From positions 12,906,698 to 12,970,697 of the forward strand of contig OZ037765.1 of assembly GCA_964035545.1 (NCBI GenBank): 64,000 nucleotides of DNA, read 5' to 3'. This DNA is from Bugula neritina (lineage: Eukaryota > Animalia > Bryozoa). Shown here piece after piece: positions 3,401 through 53,200 of the stretch. The notes under the pieces were generated by a model that saw only the letters and a list, made by a program, of their open reading frames with translations, had not been told where the DNA came from and searched no databases. Position 1 is the stretch's first letter, and each line of letters opens with the position of its first letter. The position numbers and the translations under genes are program-made.

Positions 3401-6400
3401 ATTAGATGTCGCTGCCAGCTAAGAAAAATTTTTGCTGTTGAGTAGAACAATTGTTGTTATTATGGCAATGCTAAGTCAATGTGTTATTCTATTTCTCTCT
3501 TGATAACTCTGATTAAAAGCTACAGGTTACTGCAATAAGTGTCATGGCATCTGTTTGAAAATATTTACCACAAAATTCGACATGCTTCACTTTTGAGAAA
3601 TTGGTTGACTCCCATCTGTGTTTGGGCAAGATTTTTTATATAGCTTTATAAAGAGACAATGCATACTGTTCTCCTGAACCTGTAATCTATCTGACTGGGT
3701 GGAGTTAAAAATAGACTACACCGTTCAAGAACCTTTGTGAATTTTATTCTCGAGTAGTTGCTAAATGTATGTTATTACTTGTAGTTTGAAAATAATTATT
3801 TCAACATACTACACAAGTTTGTTACTATTGGTGTTTAGCCATCTGTTCCTCTCTTCTCTCTCACACCTGGTTATTCAAATATGACCACTTGTCAGTTAAT
3901 TCTCATTAGGTTCAGTGGAATCACACCTGCCAGGCTGAAACACATCACCACCACTCTAGAAGATGTACAGAGAGACTTGCGGGAGTTACTTCCTCCTGAT
4001 GCCATCCTCTGTGGCCACTCTCTCAACAATGATCTTGTTGCTTTAAAGGTGACTTATCTTGGTAGTGTTCTGGTGTTTTGAGAGATTTCTCTGAACATCA
4101 TATAATGTGCTAACTGATAGTAAGAGCTGATTATAACAGCTGATACTGGAATCATAACCCATTCAGTTTTAGAATGAGTTGGGTGTGGGTTAGTTTGTGA
4201 AAATGTTTTGAATTGTCTTCCATATTTACTGAAGTATACTTTTGCATATAGACGGTAAAGGTTTTAATAATTTAGTGGACTTTCAAATGCAGTTTAGATG
4301 TGAAAATTCAAATGCAGAATAGATTACAAGTTGGCACTTATTTTTACGTTACATAGATATATATATAGTACAAGTAATGACAGGAGCATAGTGTAGATTC
4401 TATGCACTAATATCAACTATCAACTGATGTTTCAGATGTATCATCCTTATGTGATAGACACCTCAGTCTGCTATAATCTCAAAGGGATGGCTCATAGTAA
4501 AACTGGCCTCAGAAAGCTAGCAGCACACTTTCTCAGGTTATTTCTTACTTTCTGTTTTACTAAAAGAAATTTTGTATTGCACCAAATGTCTATGCGTATG
4601 TGGACTATCAAAGTTTATTCACATCAGCAGTAGGTATATACAGTTCTACAGTATAACAGTCTATACACAACAGTTGTACAGTATACGCTTATACATAATA
4701 TATACTCTATAGCTCTTATTAAAGTATATATACTGGGTGACTGTTAAACAGTGTGTTATACAGTATACAGCTATACAGTATGATTCAGAGCATTTCACTG
4801 TGGTTTCAGAAAAGAGATACAGTGTGGGGATGCAGGTCATTGTCCTGAAGAAGATGCCAAGACTACTATGGAACTTGTTCTGCTCAAACTTAAACTAAGT
4901 AAGAAGCTGTTCTAACATAATATATCTCTGGCAAATGTAGTATATCGTATACTGTTGATAAGTGAGTTAATGTAACTCTATTAATTTTATTGTAGGTTAT
5001 TCTTTTGCCAATGCCTTAGCTGATGGCTTCATGTCAACACCTTTAAATTTCTTCAAGCAAAAGAAGAATGTAGACAATTTGGACACTGATCAAGATACTA
5101 ATACTCCAAAAGTAAATGAGAACTTCCTTGTAACAGAATCTTCTCGACTCACTACACCGCCGCTTGACAATTCTCTAACTAACACTCCATCGGTTGCTGA
5201 TTCTGAAACTGGTGAACAAGATGGCGGTGTAATTACTAAACGGAATACATCTTCTGAGGGAAATGGTGACCTAGGTGATAATGTCACAAAAGCAACTATT
5301 AATGCTGAAATATGCCAACTTCTCTCTTTTAGTCCAAATACAATTCCTCAGCTAGAAATTAATATGTTCGATATGATGGGAAGCAGTGAGGATAAAAAAG
5401 GTGGGCAGTTATTTCCTGTTCTCTGTTTTTGAATCATTAGAATGTATTCAGTTCAAACTTTTTGTTTCTATTATTATCAACAGCTTTTATCTATGCTTTT
5501 GCTATTGGCAACATTTCCTTTTAATATCTCAATCTATCTTATTGGTTCATTTGTTAATGTAACATTGCAGTCATAGTGAGCTATTCCCATGTGAGCCATT
5601 ATTATTAACTTTATTTCAGCCGCAATTTGCACGAGATGTTTGCAAATGAGGAAACCACAAAACAAGTCTGTAGCAATAACTGAATCCTCCAAGACCAAGC
5701 ATATCATTGCAGATGTTAAGAATGCATTGCACTCTGACACACATTTTGTATATTGTAATATTGAAGACAAAAGTGGTTCTGGCGCCTCTAACACTTTATC
5801 CAAGGTTTGAATTCAAAGTTTAATTCTTACTTGGTAATAAGGCCACTAAATTTTTATGACTGTCTACATCAAGCTTTAATAAGTAGCTGGTGGAGGAAAG
5901 TTTAAACTCATAATTCATAAAATTATCAACTAGCTTTGACCTTTGCAAAACTTACTGATAGCAGCTTTATTTTGCTAGGGCCACACGTAGTGAGCTCTAG
6001 AACCTGCAGCGGGAGTAGCTTGTCACACACAACACGGGAACGAAACTGCAGTGGCTAATGGCATTTGCCAATGGCTTTACTGTTACATTTTGAAATCTCA
6101 ACAATGCACAATTGACTGGAAACTTAAATTCGAAAAGTAGGCTTGCTAAGTGATAATTAACTAATTACATGGCTGAAATTTTCGAAGTAATCATTCGGCA
6201 TTTTGTTTCCATGAAATCCTCACAGAATAACCCTATTGTTGCCTGTACGAAGTTTTTACTAGCGGTCTGTGTGTGAATCAGCTTTATGTGGTTCTAGCTT
6301 AAACTACAAGAAACACATTTTATTATTCCTAATTCTTGTGAGAACTTGATTGTTGAAACTTTCTAGAAATTTTTTTCCTCAAATCATGCCTGCAAAAAGT

Positions 6401-43401: not shown

Positions 43402-44749
43402 ATATTCACTTTCAGTCTATCACTCACCATCACCGTGACTATCAGTGTGGGCATGGCTATCACTATCAGAGTTCAGATACTGATAGTCATAGTGATAGTC
43501 AATGGCATATTAATTATTATTAATCAATAATTTAATAAAATTAAATATAATATTAATACTAATTTTAAATTTAATTAATAAATTATAAACTAGAAACTCA
43601 AATATTCATAACTCATAGCTAAATTTTAAATTTAGGCTACGTTTATGCAACATAAATACCATAGCTAAACTTCTATTAAATTTAGAATTTAGGAAGGCAC
43701 TTTTTCAAAACTTTTCCTAGCAAACATGAATATATTATTATGTACAACTATTTCAGTAGTAGTGGCCGCTTTGACTTATTAATATTATTTCAAAATCATG
43801 GCGAAAGGGTTAAAGGTTACACTTCTCTCTGTTTAATGCTAGCAACGCCCAATGAACTACAGCTCCTCAGCTAACGTTCAATGGCAACGCCCACTGAGCT
43901 GGAATAGACTAATAATTATTGAGTTCATTGGCAACGCCCGTCAGCTTTAGCGCAGACTGAGATTAAGAACGACTACTAGTACAGCAGTAAAAATCGGTAC
44001 GGTTACAGATTACACCTACACGCGCAATAAACCTCGATGAAAAAAAGCATGCTAATAGTCTGAAACCAAGTTACAATGTGAGCAAAATTTACTAAAAACA
44101 GCACGGAAATGGGGGCTAATAAAAAGTGTTAGTTGTCCGAACTTTGAACCCCGACGCCAAAACCGAGACTCTCGAATCAACGCATGCAGTGACCACAAAC
44201 TGGGGAGGGCGTTTCAAGCGATTGTTTTTGTGAGCGAGCACATGGCGAAAAAAAATTACCTTTCAGTTTTATTCAAAATAGCATCCTGTGTGTAGAAGTG
44301 CACCCAAAGCTACAGCAGATTGAACCGCCTTACTTTAAGCTTTCAAGTGACAGAATTGATGTTATCAGATATTCTGATTGCAACGTAAGGAAAAGCAAGG
44401 CCAAGTGTTTAATTTTAATTTTTATCATTAATCATTATCATTATGATTAATAATTATCTTATGAATTATGATACTCATACTGATAGTGATACTGATTATT
44501 ATTATAAATATAATATTATCTGTAAGTCAAAGTGTATTTGTAAAGCAGACAATATCATAATGTTACCTCCAGTTACCTCCAGTTTACGATCATGCTAGAC
44601 CACTAGGTAGCAGAAGCGGCATGCCTCATATGTTTACGGTTGGTCAGAAAATAAAATGCATACAATAGTCTATAAATTGGTTGCAGTGTGTGTTGCAATA
44701 TTGTTTATTAGTACAGGTAAGTTAACCTGTCAATGTTTAGATTATTCTG

Positions 44750-47514
44750 TGTGTAAATTAGTCTTGCAAGGATTGTTCCCTTTAAGGCCACGGATTGTCC
44801 GTGGCAAGAAGCTGTTATAATAGCAGTTATTATTGGTGCTGACTGATCTTGGCTGTCCTAGTGTTTGGACCCTAGTTTGGATAAAACTTTCCAGGGTATA
44901 TTAGTTCGTCATACGCTGCAGAGAAGGCTGGGTGATATTCTTCCTTTTGGAGTATCCTCATAAGGAGTCTTAGCCGTTGAGTTCTTCTTCTTTCATCGAG
45001 GGCGGCCAGCTCCAGTCTTTCTTTTGCTTCTCGCACTCCTCTTCTACCCTTGATGTTAGCTATGGCTCTTACTGCCGGTGTTTGTACCTCTTCGATGGAA
45101 TTTATTTCTTTTGTAGTATAGGGGTCCCAAACAGCAGAAGCATAGTCTAGGTGAGGAAGGCATAGGGATTTGTAAGCCATGAGTCTCACTTTTTCGGGTG
45201 CCCAGTGCAAAGCTCTTTTGATCATCCCCAGTTGTTTGTTTGCTAGCAACATTTTGCTCTGGATATGATTATCAAACTTCAGGTTGGCCTGTAGAGTCAC
45301 TCCGAGGTATGTTGATTTGTCCACCTGTTCTAGAACTGTGCCATTTAACGTGTAGTGTGCTGGTATATCTTGCTCTTTGAATGCCATAATTTTGCTCTTT
45401 TTAACATTAAACTCCATACCCCACTTTGAAGCCCAACTTCCTGCTGCATCTATGTTCCTTTGAAACCTTAGTCTGTCTTGGGCATCTGAGACAGGCTGGT
45501 AGAGGAGGGTGTCATCTGCGAAGAGACCAACTTCACAATCAACACAGTCAGGAAGATCATTTATTAACACGAGAAACAGTATGGGGCCGAGCACAGAGCC
45601 CTGAGGTACCCCAGACGTCACTGGCAGTGGTTCTGACTTTTTACCATCGAGTACGACCCTCTGAGATCGGTTTAGGAGGAAGTTGTGTACCCATCTGAGC
45701 AGATAGTCTTTCATTGGTGCAATTGTTCGTAGTTTCTCCATTAGAAGGGCATGGGGGACCCGGTCAAATGCTTTTGTAAAATCTAGGACTGCTGCGTGAA
45801 CAGCCTTATGTTTATCGACATAGTTCAGTATCTGATGGAGAGTGGCGCATAATTGGGTCTCGCAGGACAAGCCCTGGCGAAAGCCGTGTTGTCTTGTGCT
45901 CAGTACATTGTCAACGTTGGCAAGTATTTTACATAGGATGAGATGTTCTGCCATTTTACATGGGATGCTAGTGAGTGAGATGGGTCGATAGTTTTGAGCA
46001 CAATCCTCTGCACCGCTTTTATGGATAGGGGTCACATACGCCTCTTTCCACTGGGTGGGGAGCTTCTGTTGATTCATAGAAGTTTTGTATATGATCGCAA
46101 GACAAGCGGATATTAGTGGGAGATCAACCATCAGATCTGCCTTCCTCAGGCCATCTGGACCTGGAGCTTTTCCAGGCTTGAGGTTCTGTATTAACTTGGC
46201 AATACCATTGCTGTTGATATCTGGTGGATTATCTATGTTTGCTGAGTTGGGACCAAGTGATGTCAGTTGGTGCCCACTGTTGAACTGGGAGTGGAAGAAT
46301 TTGTTGAAGGTTTCCGCACAGTTTTCTGGATCTGCGTTAAGGGTACCATCAGTCATTTTGAGTTTTATGCCATTTTTGTTACTTGAGTTTCCTTTGAGGT
46401 GCCGGTAAAAGGGCTTACTGTTGCCTTCTAGGAGTGGTTGGATGATTTTATTGTGACCATATTCACTTTTTACCATCCTAAAGACTTTCTTAGCTGTTTT
46501 CCGGATTTCCTTGTATTTTGCATAACTGGATAAGTCCCCGTTTGTTTTGTAGTGATTATAGCTTTTCCTCTCTTTACGTGATATCCGTCTACACTCTTTG
46601 TTAAACCAAACAGGTTCATTTTTAAGCTTAGACGACAGTACTTTCGTTTGGACATGGTCACATATGGCCTGTTGTAGACTAGATGAAAAATGATCCCACA
46701 TTTCCTGTACATCATCCAATTCATCTAGGTCATGTTTAGTTTTTTGCAAATCTTCCCGGAATTTGTTGATATCTACTCTGTGGTAATCTTTGACAGTTTT
46801 GGAGGTTACTATATGGTGGTCTTTTGCTTTGTTTTATCGGATATTTGCTTTTATCATGGCGTGATCACTTAGCCCTGGGAAGATTACGTCTTGGGATGTT
46901 AAGTCTTGGGGGGAGTTGGTGCAAAGTAAGTCGAGCGTGTTGCCATGAATGTGGGTTGGTGAGGTTATTAGTTGACTTAGGTTATAGAAGTTCAACATAC
47001 ATAGGAATGAGTTATGAAGGACCTTATCCTGGGCCTTCAGTTTGGGTTGATAAGTGTGCCAATTAATGTGAGGGAGATTGAAATCCCCGGCTAAGATGAT
47101 GTGGTCATTGGGGAACTGTTGAGTTAATAATTCTAGGTTGCTACTCAATATGGATACATCTCTATCATGTGGGGGTCTGTAGTAACATCCGACAATTAAG
47201 CTCTCCTCTATTCTTACAAATATGATCTCGGCACTAGTTTTATCTTCTATGTTAATTTGGGTAGAGCGCAGGTTGTCATCAATGGCGATTAAGACCCCAC
47301 CCCCATTTACATTACGATACTTTCTGTAGATCCTTTTGTTGTTATAATCAAAGATGGTGTGACTTGGTATCATCTGATTTATGTGTGTCTCAGTCAGGCA
47401 GATTATGTCGGAATTATATGTTTGTGATGATAGTTCAATAGTTTTGCCTTTGAGAGATCTCACATTGGCAAGAAAGAATTTTAAACACTGGTCTGTTTGG
47501 TCATGTATCGCCAT
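44750..47514 (-). pseudogene. LINE ORF2: APE endonuclease + reverse transcriptase, frameshifted
   Basis: ANVRSL, IICLTETH, GGGV, YRPP, GDFN, TLDL, SDH (EN). KAPGPDG, YRPISLT, QHGFR, LDFTKAFD, GVPQGSVLGP, FADD (RT). C-terminal SFLPRTIR lies in another frame after 44872. Confidence 0.93.
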
Positions 47515-48510
47515 TCCCTGAAGGAGATTTTGTCTGTATTTTCATATTTCTTATCCGATAGTCAGTTTCTTGGTCAGTGTCACTGTTTTCCCCTTTCATT
47601 TGTTTTATCTCTTGCCGAAGGGCATACTGCTGGTCACGGATCTCTTTGCATTCATCAAGTTTGCAGTAAATCTTGCGTCCACGTAGTGTAGCATTTGTTC
47701 TTTTTAGGAATTCCCACTTTGAATATTCGTCTGGAAATTCTATTTTAATCGGCCTTGGTTTGTTTTTGTCAACTGGTCCTGAGGTCTGTAAGCGTATTGC
47801 TCTTAGGGGTTTCGGAGTTGCATGGAAAGTATCACTCGTCATTAGGTCTTTAATCATCTCCAGTGCGCTTTTACCTTCCTGTTCATCTATGCCATAAAGA
47901 ACGGCATTATTTTTCCTGTTTTCAGTCTCCCGTTGTTCAATACTCTTCTTCAGCAGGTTTCGAGCACTGTCGCTGATCTCCATCCCTTTCTTCAGGTTTC
48001 AGTATTTGACTTTGCAGCGTCGGCATATGATTTCTCTAGTTTTGTCATACTTTCTTCAAGGGCAGTGTTTGTTGCTCCAATCTTTGCATTAATTTGTTGC
48101 ATTATGTCTTCAATTTTATTAAGCTTTCTTGAGTGGGTGCTGTGAAGCGCAAGAGAGTCTTCACCGTTGTTGTTCACCCTGTCTCAGCCTTGAAGAGAAG
48201 CTTCAATGACTGGAAGGCATGTGTTGCAGAACCATTTCACATTCTTTTCATCCATTTTGTCTAGCGTAGCAACATCTGAATTGGTGAGGCTTTGGCAGGT
48301 ACCATGGAACCAATCATCACAAAAATCACATTGGATCCACTTAGCACCAAATTTTTGAGAAAGGCCTTTTGTGTTAGTAACATAGCAATCGACAATGTTA
48401 CAAGTTTTGCATTCTGGGTTGGTCGAGTCTTTGTTTTTGTCATTTTGAGACTGTTGTGATCCTGGTTGTGGTTGGCTTTGAGTGTTCCAGTCACCAGCCA
48501 TCACGGACAA
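47501..48510 (-). pseudogene. LINE ORF1: PHD finger, coiled coil, RRM-like region; split into three frames
   Basis: CKTC...WIQCDFCDDWFHGTC...WFCNTC (48184-48510), KSYADAAK, RKNNAVLYGIDE...KPRPIKIEF. Confidence 0.85.
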
Positions 48511-48805
48511 CTAGAGTCTTGTGTTGTAGTAACAATACAATATAATGATAATTATGTTTATAGTTATTATTATTATTTATAATACTATACTAATTCGTAG
48601 TATAGTATAGTTATTGGTTTCTAAGATCTAGAGAGCAAAAAGTTACTTTTTGTATGTTTTTGTATGGGGGAAATTTTTTGTATGCTTTGAGTATGTTTGG
48701 ATATGAGGCACGCCCTACCTAAGTGGTGAATTTTGAACCAAATTGGCATAAGAATTTAAATCTTAAATTTTTGCGTCCGCCATCTTCGCAACCTTGACCT
48801 TGTAT

Positions 48806-49045
48806 TCAAGGTTGAATTTCTGCAAGTATGCCTTTCATAGATCTAGTGTTAGAATAAAGAACTTTGAATGAACTTACATTGCTATTTGAACAATTTTGTT
48901 TTTGTGAATTTTTTATTTTAAATGCGGATTTTCTTTTCGCTTCTGTCTCAGTTCCGGCCTCAATAAAAATCTCTTGTGTACGCTGTGCACTATTACGATT
49001 AAATCTAGCGGGTATCTTAGAAACCCTTGCTTCAGAACATCCCAC
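48806..49045 (-). pseudogene. fragment of an older LINE (start of the APE endonuclease)
   Basis: FKVLYSNTRSMKG matches the EN N-terminal motif. A probable continuation (YDIVCFT) is at about 44560-44535, beyond the inserted CR1 element. Confidence 0.55.
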
Positions 49046-49050
49046 TGTTA

Positions 49051-50268
49051 ATTACCTCTGATTACCTCTGATGAGGTAGAACGCTCTTGACCATCATAAG
49101 ACGTTAGTAGAGCGCCTCATGTGTGTGACAGGGAGTGTTCCGTTGTTTTTTTTAGTGCTTCCGCATTACCGCTGATATTATTCAATTTAGATGGTGATAT
49201 TTAAAAGGAAAATTGATAGGTAAGCTAGGTAAACCCTCTCATGTCGCGTATCGTTCTTGGTAAGAAACTTTGGTGGTAACAGCTAGAGCGAGAAGAAATG
49301 GAGTTAGGTAAACCTTTTGTTGCTGATCTCGTAGTTACGGACATGAGAGAGCGATTTTCCACAACCTCATCATAGTCTGATGAAAGTGTACTGTGTGTGG
49401 CTTCAGACTGTAGAATACGTGTCAATAGTGTGAGTCTATGATTTTTACGCCTCGCTTGTAATGGTAGTAGACCCAGTTCGCATCGAGCGTCACTAACACT
49501 CTCTCGCCCCTTGAGACCTGATATGAACCTCACAGCACGGTTCTGAACCATTTCTATATCATGTATGGTGGTTTTTAAATAAGGATCCCAGAGGATATCT
49601 GCATAATCCAACCATGGACGGCAGAGGCTGGTGTAAGCCAAGAGTTTGCCATTTTTTGGAACATCATGGAGAACAAACTTTATTGCTCCCAGGACTCTGC
49701 TATTTTTTGTGATTTCAGCGCAATGTGTTTGTCAAATTTAAGGTTACTCTGCATGGTCACACCGAGATACTTGGTCTCTTCAGTCTATTGGAAAGGTGTA
49801 CTCCCAAGCTTATAAGATGGAAGGCCTGTTTGGCGACCAAATGATATAGCATGGCATTTACTTTCATTAAAAGGCATCTTCCACTGTTGTGACCAGTTAT
49901 ATACTGCATCGATATTGACCTGGAAGTCTGAGCATCTGCCTCTGAGTTTACTCTTTGGTATAACAGGGTGTCGTCTGCATAAAGACTGACACAACAATTG
50001 ACACAACTTGGTAAATCGTTAATATAAACCAGGAATAGTGTGGGTCTTAGCACAGATCCTTGGGGGACGCCGGATGTTACTGGGAGCTCAGTTGAGCATG
50101 AGCCTTTGATTACAACTCTCTGTTTTCTGTTGGTGATGAAATCTTGAATCCAATTTATAATCTGTGGTTTAACTTCTGGAATGCGTTGTAGTTTCAGTAG
50201 CAGTAGGGAATGGGGGACCTTGTCAGATGCTTTTTTGAAGTCTAGAACAATTGCATGTGTGTCTTGTG
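49051..50268 (-). mobile_element. 5'-truncated CR1-group LINE (RT C-terminal half)
   Basis: AIVLDFKKASDKVPH, GVPQGSVL, YADD, SFLPRTIRD; (ATTACCTCTG)2 tail at 49051-49070. Confidence 0.88.
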
Positions 50269-50269
50269 A

Positions 50270-53200
50270 TGTCTCTGGTTGTCTAGCACCAAGAATTGAC
50301 TCAACCTTCGCGGCATTTGGAGAGATGCCATCTTTAGAAAAAATATGACCAAGAAGCTTGATGGAACTCAAACCAAAGCAACATTTGACAGGATTTAGAG
50401 TCAAGTGACACTCTGACAAGTAAGCCATCACTTGCATTAGCCTATCTCTGTACTCTTCAGAATCCTTACCAAACACAACTATGTCATCAGCCATGTTTAA
50501 GACACCACTAAAACCATTGATAGTTTTCTGAATTGTGTACTGGAATACTTCAGGAGCAACTGACACTCCCATTCCAAGCCTACGAAATAGACCTACATGG
50601 CTAACAAAAGTAGTAATGTCTCTGGAACTTGGCTTCAGCTCACACTGAAAGAAACCCTGACGAAAATCTAGCTTAGAAAGTACCTGAGCACCATTCAACT
50701 CTACAAGCATCTCTTGAACGGTAGGAACTAGATATCTTTCTCTGATGATAGCAGTATTGACTCTATGCATGTCAACACAAAGGGGAACCTCATCACCTTC
50801 TTTAGGAACTACAACTGAAGGACTAACCCACATAAAAGCTACACCCTGCACTGGCTCAATAATATCCTCCTCAACTAACTGATTCAAAGGTTTCTCAACC
50901 CTACTGTGATAGCTAAATGAAAGCCGTCTAACTGGTTGGGCAACTGGTTCGCACTCAGTATCTATATGCAACTTGACCTGTACATCTTTCAGCTTACCAA
51001 CACCGCGGAAACATTCTGGGTACGGTGCCTTTACATAACTAACTCAGCATCACTGATATCTGTAACACTACACATGTTAGGCTTCATATGAATGACATGA
51101 CGTTTGCTAGCAGTTTCTGCACTCATAAGATTACATGCACTACCATCAAAAACATAAAATATAGCATTAGAAGTATGTGAGTTAACAGTAATTTCTGCAC
51201 AAAACTGACCCAACAATGGTAAGGGAGTTGATTGACCATACAAACTCTTAGTAGCAGGTTGCAATACTATGTCATTACTCAACAGTTCATATGTATGTTT
51301 GTCAATAAATCTAAATCTACAGCACCTGAGTCTATTAGAAAAGTCACTCTCTTACCACCAAGTGCAGTTTGACACTTGGGAGTTTGTTAGCTGTTCTCAT
51401 TTTTAACTACGAACTGATTACTGAAACTGTCAACAGCCTTTGGAGTTACAACTGGCTCCACAGGAGTGTGCTGTACAGTGTTTGTTATAGATTTAAAAGT
51501 AGTCTTACTATGGCAGTACTTGGATCTGGCATAATTTACAGTCTTCTTGCAGTCTCTGCAGGTCTTGCTTAAGGCAGGGCAACTCTCATCATGAGATTTA
51601 TGTCCAGCCTTAGAACATCTGAAGCAGATTATGTCCCTAGTAGAAGTAGTATGAATCTTTTTATTATTGCTAGTTGTGGTCGTCTTTTTGTTCTGAAAAT
51701 TTGTTACTCTAGCAACAGCGTTATTAGCAGCAGTCGGTGTGGCAGTAATCATCTCCCCTTCTGGTAGTTGAACTGTAGCTGCTACTTCCATAGCTTCATC
51801 TCTCTCTCTCTCTTTGCTATCCCTCTAAGTAGAGTATGATGTCTGCCTGCAGCTGTTTGTGAGTAGCTTGATGACTTCTGAGTCCTATCAGTGATCTGCA
51901 TATGCGGTCACAGCGGAAGCATTTGAGGTCATCACTCGGTGTGTCTGTTGAGCTAAGCCTTCTTGCGGCCAGCTCTAAGTTCGTCTCTGTGTCGCATTCT
52001 TTCTTCTTCAAAGATTTGCATGCCTTTATGAACCATAGATCTCTATCTGGTCCTCCTTGCGGCATTCCATTCCCAGGTCTCTGTTCTGATGTGAGAGCGC
52101 TTCATACTGTCTTTGAGACAGTCTTTAAAGCGCTTCCTCTGTCCTCCTTGCAATCTTTTACCTATTTGTAGCTCCCCATAAAGGATCTGTTTAGGAAGTC
52201 TGTGACTTTTCATTCTCACTACATGTCCCGACCAACGAAGTCTGTTCTTGGTGACGAGGCTTTCAAGGCTTGGAATCTTTGTTTGTTGGTATACGCTGTT
52301 ATTAGTGCGCTTGTCAGTCCATTTGATGTCCAGTATTCCTCGCAATTTTCTCATGTGATAATTTTCTAGCTTCTTTATGTCAGTACTGTATGTAGCCCAT
52401 GTCTCAGATGCATACAGAAGTGTTGGTATGATGACAGCCTACTCACTACCCTGTCCCTGCCGCCACCTTCTAATCGCCATAGGGCTTTGTAAGTGTTTGC
52501 AGGCAGAATGCTGTGCGTGGATTAAAGTGGTTCTCATGATGCATTACAGAGAGCCACTGGCTTGGCTTGTCATACCCTGATCCAATGGCAAGGATACCTC
52601 GACAATTGGGGATATAATAAGTTGCAATGGACAACCGTTGGTCTGTTGTTCAACCTCAACCTGGCTGGAATAACGCATCCAGATGGTTCACCTTCATGCG
52701 GTAGAAAACAATATATGACATTGGCAACATGGAACGTCCGGACACTTATGGACAATAAGAGCAGTGACAGACCTGAGAGGCGTACTGCATTTGTGGCGCG
52801 TGAACTCAGAAGACTGAATATTGATATCGCTGCACTTCAAGAGACTAGACTCGCAGATGAGTGTCAGTTGACTGAGATGGGTGGCGGCTATACATTCTAT
52901 TGGAAAGGAAAGGAGGCAGATGACCACAGGCTGTATGGAGTGGGTTTTGCTATCAAGAATGAACTGGTAAAGCACATGGATCATCTTCCTGTTGGAATCT
53001 CGGATCGACTGATGACTCTGCAGATAAACATTGGAAATAACAGGAAAGCTACCCTGGTCAGCGCATATTCTCCAACGCTTTTGGCTGAACAGGCTGACAA
53101 GGAGCTATTCTACTCAGCTCTTGATCACACAGTGTCACAGATCCCGATTGCTGACAAGGTTGTTCTACTGGGAGACTTCAACGCAAGAGTTGGTACTGAC

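Follow-up and report, generated by a model that had tools for sequence, protein, structure and literature searches.

Family-specific complementarity between the two ends of a CR1-like LINE from Bugula neritina points to a probable long-range pairing in its sense RNA

A CR1-like LINE with complementary ends

The DNA analyzed here (the window) is a stretch of 64,000 nucleotides from the bryozoan Bugula neritina (assembly GCA_964035545.1, contig OZ037765.1, positions 12,906,698 to 12,970,697). On its reverse strand lies a CR1-like long interspersed nuclear element (LINE) in which a segment of the 5' leader is complementary to a segment of the 3' untranslated region (UTR) close to the tail. The element, the two segments, and the tail are located as follows (window coordinates).

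44562-48801, minus strand: young, full-length but defective CR1-like LINE of 4240 nucleotides (nt), delimited by shared copy ends, contig breaks, and Pfam domains.
48701-48727, minus strand: 5' leader pairing segment, RNA nt 75-101, of which 48714-48701 contribute to a 14-bp helix and 48727-48715 to a 12-bp helix (sequence, duplex energy, and alignment).
44599-44631, minus strand: 3' UTR pairing segment, RNA nt 4171-4203 of 4240 (sequence, duplex energy, and alignment).
44564-44583, minus strand: tail, composed of two tandem 10-nt units (ACTGGAGGTA), without poly(A) (sequence).

Read from 5' to 3', the element is composed of a 5' UTR, a first open reading frame (ORF1) with a PHD finger, a second (ORF2) with an AP endonuclease (EN) and a reverse transcriptase (RT), a 3' UTR, and the tandem-repeat tail. 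Its 5' end, at approximately 48801, is marked by the same start base in four sister copies elsewhere in the genome, which have unrelated flanks. The 3' end, at approximately 44562, is the point at which at least 40 copies terminate after a (ACTGGAGGTA)n tail, and contigs from other public runs break at both 44562 and 48801. The copies (five full-length copies and at least 40 3' ends) are 94 to 98% identical, marking the family as young, and 5' truncation is frequent, with five to seven 5' ends versus at least 40 3' ends. One sister copy (L005:1370-1750, plus strand) has an atypical 5' junction, at which the first ~40 nt are missing and unrelated sequence stands in their place, including a short stretch of duplicated leader (AAATTCTTATG...).

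Pfam searches place Exo_endo_phos/Exo_endo_phos_2 at 46837-47514 and RVT_1 at 44875-46749, and they match PHD (PF00628) with an E value of 2.4e-6 in the ORF1 piece at 48187-48510. PHD families are also matched by ORF1 of four related elements from other assemblies (L067, L069, L073, and L074). The domains found in the element are those of a LINE only; the same searches returned neither an RNase H domain nor a DNA-transposase-like domain. An earlier note on this DNA, made from the letters alone, had called the LINE full-length, which is correct for its extent (4240 nt). The copy in the window is not intact, however, as stops or frameshifts disrupt both ORFs: ORF1 is interrupted downstream of the PHD finger, and ORF2 consists of two separate pieces, one with EN (46834-47514) and one with RT (44872-46749). 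Relative to this copy, the contigs of other runs show small indels at 44898, 47515, and 47996, and sister copies contain open ORFs of 343 and 940 amino acids, ORF2 being a single open frame of 940 amino acids.

The domains, the stem-loop described below, and the repeat tail together led us to assign the element provisionally as CR1-like (CR1/L2 group). The only named relative is a bird protein with 35% identity (P0075). A PHD finger in ORF1 of CR1-like elements was reportedly described by Kapitonov and Jurka in 2003.

The leader and the 3' UTR can form a long duplex

On the sense strand, 48714-48701 pair with 44631-44618 in a 14-bp helix, and 48727-48715 pair with 44610-44599 in a 12-bp helix; between the two, 44617-44611 form a 7-nt bulge on the 3' side. 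The 14-bp helix contains one G.U pair (A.C on the other strand) and takes in a conserved GAGGC and the 5' arm of a 3' hairpin, and the 12-bp helix contains one bulged U. In total, the pairing amounts to 25 Watson-Crick pairs, the single G.U, and the bulged U, with a local duplex energy of -40.3 kcal/mol. Both helices are exactly as the earlier note had described them from the sequence, and its placement of the segments near the two ends of the element was also accurate. The 5' arm starts at nt 75, and the 3' segment stops 15 nt short of the tail, ~38 to 40 nt from the 3' end, so that both segments lie inside the element. As independent insertions share their 5' termini, the 5' segment is part of the template RNA.

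Smith-Waterman alignment of the 5' UTR with the reverse complement of the 3' UTR gives a score of 31, which none of 2000 shuffles reach (mean, 19.1; standard deviation, 2.4; maximum, 30), and the two UTRs share no other inverted words of at least 11 bases. RNAduplex on the whole UTRs, which allows very long interior loops and inflates the energies, yields a z score of only -2.0; Smith-Waterman scores and short core segments were used in its place. A search of Rfam 15 with both strands of 44400-48950 produced no match up to an E value of 1.

The 5' segment is identical in four of the five full-length copies, while the fifth (L002) carries one uncompensated G>A that looks like a mutation after insertion. 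The 3' segment is nearly invariant in approximately 40 copies, wobble position and bulge included. Because all of these irregularities (G.U position, 7-nt bulge, and bulged U) are fixed within the family, the two arms are inherited separately, and neither is regenerated from the other in each cycle. A mechanism in which one arm is recopied from the other, as in elements with long terminal repeats (LTRs), was therefore rejected. Also rejected was a direct repeat, with the hairpin present once more in the leader, since the scores in direct orientation are ordinary. Terminal inverted repeats (TIRs) of a DNA transposon do not describe the arms either, which lie 75 and ~38 nt from the ends of an element with LINE domains only.

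Related families keep complementarity with their own partner

Relatives with both UTRs were taken from other public assemblies by protein word search and exact-protein look-ups. The host genome itself contains many related LINE families at 43 to 58% ORF2 identity (L047-L066), which entered the comparison with their 3' UTRs only. Five further full-length elements (L067, L069, L070, L074, and L159) have ORF2 proteins that are 45 to 58% identical to that of the window element and to each other. At this distance, with 42 to 55% of the ORF2 protein differing, the UTRs are largely unalignable between the families. Nevertheless, each of the five elements has its own complementary pair of 5' and 3' segments, with a sequence different from that in the window. 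The observed inverted score is reached by none of 500 shuffles for L070 and L074, by 1 of 500 for L069 and for L159, and by 7 of 500 for L067. The direct-orientation control is significant in none of the five.

A null of natural sequences was built from 15 elements, which provide 210 noncognate pairs of UTRs (mean score, 18.5; standard deviation, 3.1; maximum, 30). The six cognate scores range from 25 to 37, and every one of them ranks first of 15 in its own row and its own column; six first ranks out of six have a chance probability of approximately 1e-7. Likewise, when core segments were matched in a 6 x 6 energy matrix, no other duplex in any row or column was as strong as the cognate one (-31 to -48 kcal/mol), and of 720 assignments the cognate one came out best. 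In each family, between 22 and 37 Watson-Crick matches are kept with the family's own partner, and not with those of the others. Column-by-column covariation of the long-range helix is impossible because the helices are unalignable between families, and compensatory change is seen at individual positions. L067 has GUGGC where the others have GAGGC, with its leader partner altered to match, and the pair adjoining the core, which is G-C in the window, reads U-A in L074.

A seventh case is provided by L072, whose leader pairs with the 3' UTR of the L060 family of the host genome (80% identical in the ORFs). Five contigs were not usable on their own, namely, L072 (3' part replaced at ~3957), L073, L068, and L071 (no 5' UTR), and L077 (3' UTR too short). 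As the earlier note had supposed, the complementarity is a property of the element: it is present in all copies and recurs in six related families with sequences that differ and stay complementary. Neither of the outcomes that the note had named as contradicting it, absence from other copies or a segment outside the element, was encountered.

Nine more distant CR1-like elements (25 to 41% identity) show no significant inverted repeat, a weak negative because the ends of these elements are undefined. The best of them, L090 (ERZ1740056; 34% identity), has a borderline score of 24 (p = 0.023). A scan of viral contigs returned one unrelated RT, and a metagenome scan returned distant relatives only (25 to 41% identity), of which the nine just described are those with both UTRs. 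The negative result for the nine suggests that the pairing belongs to one clade. Moreover, a single assembly, ERZ6864376, contains elements with the pairing (L074 and L159) and elements without detectable pairing (L075 and L076), which indicates that the pairing follows the clade of the element and not the host.

The window also holds a second CR1-like copy. At 49056-50270 on the minus strand, ~255 nt upstream of the 5' end of the element, lies a 5'-truncated 1.2-kb copy of a different family, 96% identical to L071 and of the same family as the genome loci L058/59/63/65.

The 3' partner lies at or beside a conserved hairpin

The 3' pairing segment overlaps a second structure.

44591-44623, minus strand: conserved 3' hairpin, with an outer stem of 44623-44619 with 44595-44591 that encloses an inner stem-loop (covariation and RNAalifold).

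All families share the same 3' UTR layout, in which AUGAGGC is followed by a 5- to 7-bp outer stem around an inner stem-loop and by a repeat tail that is specific to each family. In an alignment of 11 families, compensatory changes occur in four of the five pairs of the outer stem, and 94% of the cells are paired. The covariation score is reached by none of 500 shuffles, slid partners fall to 19 to 54%, and RNAalifold predicts the same outer stem. The local hairpin that the earlier note had drawn as an alternative fold of the same 3' bases is therefore real. It is presumed to be the recognition element of the ORF2 protein (ORF2p), by analogy with L2/CR1 elements.

Across the families, the leader's 3' partner is never farther than ~30 nt from the GAGGC hairpin, and in five of seven families the pairing covers one arm of it. 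In the window element, L067, L070, L074, and the L072/L060 pair, the covered part comprises GAGGC together with the outer stem's 5' arm.

A separate observation concerns the spacer located after the hairpin's 5' arm (alignment A3, columns 18-22; window 44618-44614; C-G/C-C-U-U). It is conserved in sequence across families and would be unpaired both in the hairpin and in the panhandle formed by the long-range pairing, which makes it a candidate for protein contact.

The leader segment follows a conserved 5' block

Two further motifs define the architecture of the 5' leader.

48728-48739, minus strand: conserved 12-nt motif (GGTTCAAAATTC), which adjoins the 5' pairing segment on its upstream side and marks the homologous position in other families (5' UTR comparison).
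48775-48786, minus strand: YY1-like motif (AAGATGGCGGAC), nt 16-27, whose reverse complement contains CGCCATCTT (5' UTRs of the window element, L067, L074, and L069).

The 5' UTRs of the clade share this order: a terminal block with the YY1-like motif, the 12-nt motif, and, directly after the latter, the variable pairing segment, often around a GCCUC core. Across families, the 5' partner lies 30 to 190 nt upstream of the ORF1 start. The YY1-like motif is upstream of the pairing segment and not part of the pairing, and it is found near the 5' terminus of the relatives as well (L067, ~137-148; L074, ~16-27; L069, ~272-283). It is likely part of an internal promoter. The promoters of human and mouse L1 elements carry a YY1 site close to their 5' end (PMC11602158), and the window motif was compared with the site of mouse L1 Tf. 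In this unrelated LINE clade, the motif may represent a convergent way to fix the start of transcription.

Interpretation of the pairing

That the two segments have been selected to pair with each other as nucleic acids is very probable, given the cognate ranks and the changes on both sides. It is likely, with somewhat less assurance, that this pairing takes place in sense RNA. Overall, we favor the explanation that they constitute a selected long-range pairing in the LINE's own sense RNA, which is the best of those considered and probably correct. The choice of strand draws on the isolated mismatches, which comprise four G.U on the sense strand, no A.C, and four others that are not transitions. 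The count of four to zero favors sense RNA (p of approximately 0.06, a small sample). When the entire RNA is folded to its minimum free energy (MFE), the helix is present in each of the six elements, a result given little weight (see below).

Formation of the pairing in RNA and binding of ORF2p to the hairpin are inferences, as is a connection of the two as a switch, the last of these being a tentative suggestion. The leader stretch after the conserved promoter-proximal block would pair with the 3' UTR at or beside the hairpin before the repeat tail, closing the 4.2-kb RNA into a panhandle. In most families, panhandle and hairpin would be mutually exclusive, as one hairpin arm would be used in both, and a leader duplex of -31 to -48 kcal/mol before ORF1 would obstruct scanning ribosomes. 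Such a conformational switch could separate the RNA as a message from the RNA as a template or ribonucleoprotein. Scanning or translation would then open the panhandle and free the hairpin for ORF2p made from the same RNA. A switch is favored among the possible functions because hairpin and panhandle both look selected, mostly exclude each other, and the duplex precedes ORF1. Of the two functions put forward in the earlier note, a switch between translation and reverse transcription would fit the overlap with a hairpin arm in five of seven families, and selection for full-length RNA is a further candidate. A wider proposal, that a whole clade of CR1-like LINEs needs the pairing between leader and hairpin to retrotranspose, with cyclization working in target-primed reverse transcription, is more speculative still and on balance unlikely.

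Several observations weigh against a pairing in sense RNA with these roles. The antisense duplex is as stable as the sense duplex, so that the strand is not decided by energy and rests on the wobble count and on biology. End-to-end pairs also occur in the MFE of two of four control elements, for which reason the whole-RNA folds were given little weight. Among the public runs, available as contigs, the only one labeled as RNA extends over no more than 2.3 kb at the 3' end of the element. Only five to seven copies have a 5' end, and covariation within the family is uninformative at 94 to 98% identity with nearly invariant arms. The seventh family is a combination across species, joining the 5' UTR of L072 to the 3' UTR of L060. 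The register differs among families as well: L069 pairs with the 3' arm and the tail, and L159 pairs just upstream of the hairpin and leaves the stem untouched, which means that masking of the hairpin is not universal. Finally, masking of the hairpin would handicap full-length RNA relative to 5'-truncated transcripts, in which the hairpin is always free.

The same registers bear on a purely translational role, in which a base-paired closed loop would replace the bridge from poly(A) through the poly(A)-binding protein (PABP) to the cap, much as 3' cap-independent translation elements of plant viruses pair with the 5' UTR. The RNA of the element has no poly(A) tail, its 5' partner is in the leader, 30 to 190 nt before the ORF1 start, and the position of the L159 pairing off the hairpin fits simple juxtaposition better than masking. 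However, known translation-enhancing kissing contacts measure 5 to 7 bp, and a leader duplex of 25 to 38 bp should hinder scanning and not help it. As the pairing also uses up a hairpin arm in five of seven families, we regard this role as rather improbable.

Still less credit is given to a function in minus-strand cDNA, where a DNA panhandle would carry the newly synthesized cDNA 3' end back to the site of integration and aid second-strand synthesis or the 5' junction of full-length copies. Full-length insertion is indeed limiting for LINEs, as the five to seven 5' ends versus at least 40 3' ends illustrate, and the equal stability of the antisense duplex would suit this explanation. Yet all four transition mismatches, which are G.U on the sense strand, become C.A mismatches in cDNA, and the segments are nonterminal, at 75 and ~40 nt from the ends. 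Moreover, cDNA stays paired to its template unless RNase H acts, a domain that the Pfam search did not find in the element.

Alternatively, the arms could be two copies, in opposite orientation, of one double-stranded DNA site that coevolves with a protein of the element, without any pairing. Coevolution of transposase and TIR does give repeats that match within families and differ between them, but here the arms are nonterminal, and the Pfam search found no DNA-transposase-like domain. The arms differ by family-specific bulges of 3 to 7 nt, which would alter the spacing of a protein site and which a duplex tolerates, so that a duplex is favored. With the 3' arm also belonging to an RNA hairpin that has its own covariation, a protein site is very improbable. 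A lack of function, with the 3' region long ago duplicated in inverted orientation into the leader and kept by chance or hitchhiking, or with chance matches, would agree with the nine distant elements that lack the pairing, but it is equally hard to credit, as neutral decay at 42 to 55% ORF2 divergence would have erased the 22 to 37 own-partner Watson-Crick matches and the six first ranks of six have the chance probability of ~1e-7 given above.

Comparison with known systems

How the ORF2 protein picks its own full-length RNA (cis-preference and template choice) is a long-standing question, and no role beyond promoter activity is established for the LINE 5' UTR. A conserved, family-specific duplex between the 5' leader and the 3' hairpin offers a concrete RNA element that can be mutated for testing template choice. 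If the clade does need this pairing to retrotranspose, the leader segment would be the first 5' RNA element acting in cis that is shown to govern template choice, or the transition from translation to template, in a LINE. Cis-preference, and the way in which full-length RNA is told apart from truncated RNA, could then be explained mechanistically. The question bears on the engineering of DNA insertion systems of the LINE and R2 types, in which the ends of the template RNA are being optimized. Full-text literature searches, with incomplete coverage and hence no proof of absence, found no LINE precedent for 5'-3' pairing.

In the non-LTR element R2, the protein binds a 3' RNA and a 5' RNA, which govern the order in which the DNA is cleaved, and the ends are not known to pair. 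The resemblance lies in the presence of both RNA ends of a non-LTR element in the integration complex. In contrast to the LINE described here, R2 is site specific and uses a different endonuclease, and its ends are held by protein.

The hairpin itself is of a known kind. ORF2 proteins of the L2 clade (ZfL2-1, ZfL2-2, and UnaL2; stringent type) recognize a 3' stem-loop through a region between EN and RT, according to the sections of PMC4176376 drawn on here. The conserved stem-loop of those elements stands just before a tail of short repeats, the same position as the hairpin in the window. In those sections of PMC4176376, recognition concerns the 3' tail only and a 5' partner does not come up, and relative to them the complementary 5' leader segment is the new part.

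For the pairing, a parallel is found in the yeast LTR retrotransposon Ty1, for which the consulted part of PMC3681743 describes a sequence at the 5' end of the genomic RNA (CYC5) that is complementary to a sequence near the 3' end (CYC3). In Ty1 and in this LINE alike, a 5' sequence of a retroelement RNA is thus complementary to a sequence near its 3' end. Ty1, unlike the LINE, is an LTR element primed by tRNA within particles, whereas the LINE is a non-LTR element that primes on nicked target DNA. The CYC contact of Ty1 spans ~14 nt, is located beside the primer-binding site, and is promoted by Gag. The duplex of the LINE is longer (25 to 38 bp with bulges), and its 3' partner is the region of the presumed RT-recognition hairpin.

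Flavivirus genomes cyclize through 5'-3' elements (CS, UAR, and DAR) that compete with local stem-loops and are lineage specific yet complementary; a role in switching the RNA between translation and copying has been proposed for them. The LINE arms similarly compete with a local hairpin, and they differ between families and stay complementary. In flaviviruses, by contrast, the RNA polymerase is loaded at the 5' end and function has been shown by compensatory mutants, while the LINE pairing is known here from sequence. As in these cyclization elements, complementary sequences are present near both ends inside the transcript, and their complementarity is kept through changes on both sides. Ty1 CYC5/CYC3 and flavivirus cyclization are consequently the closest analogues of the pairing, and, if our explanation holds, genome cyclization as known from Ty1 and several RNA viruses would extend to target-primed retrotransposons.

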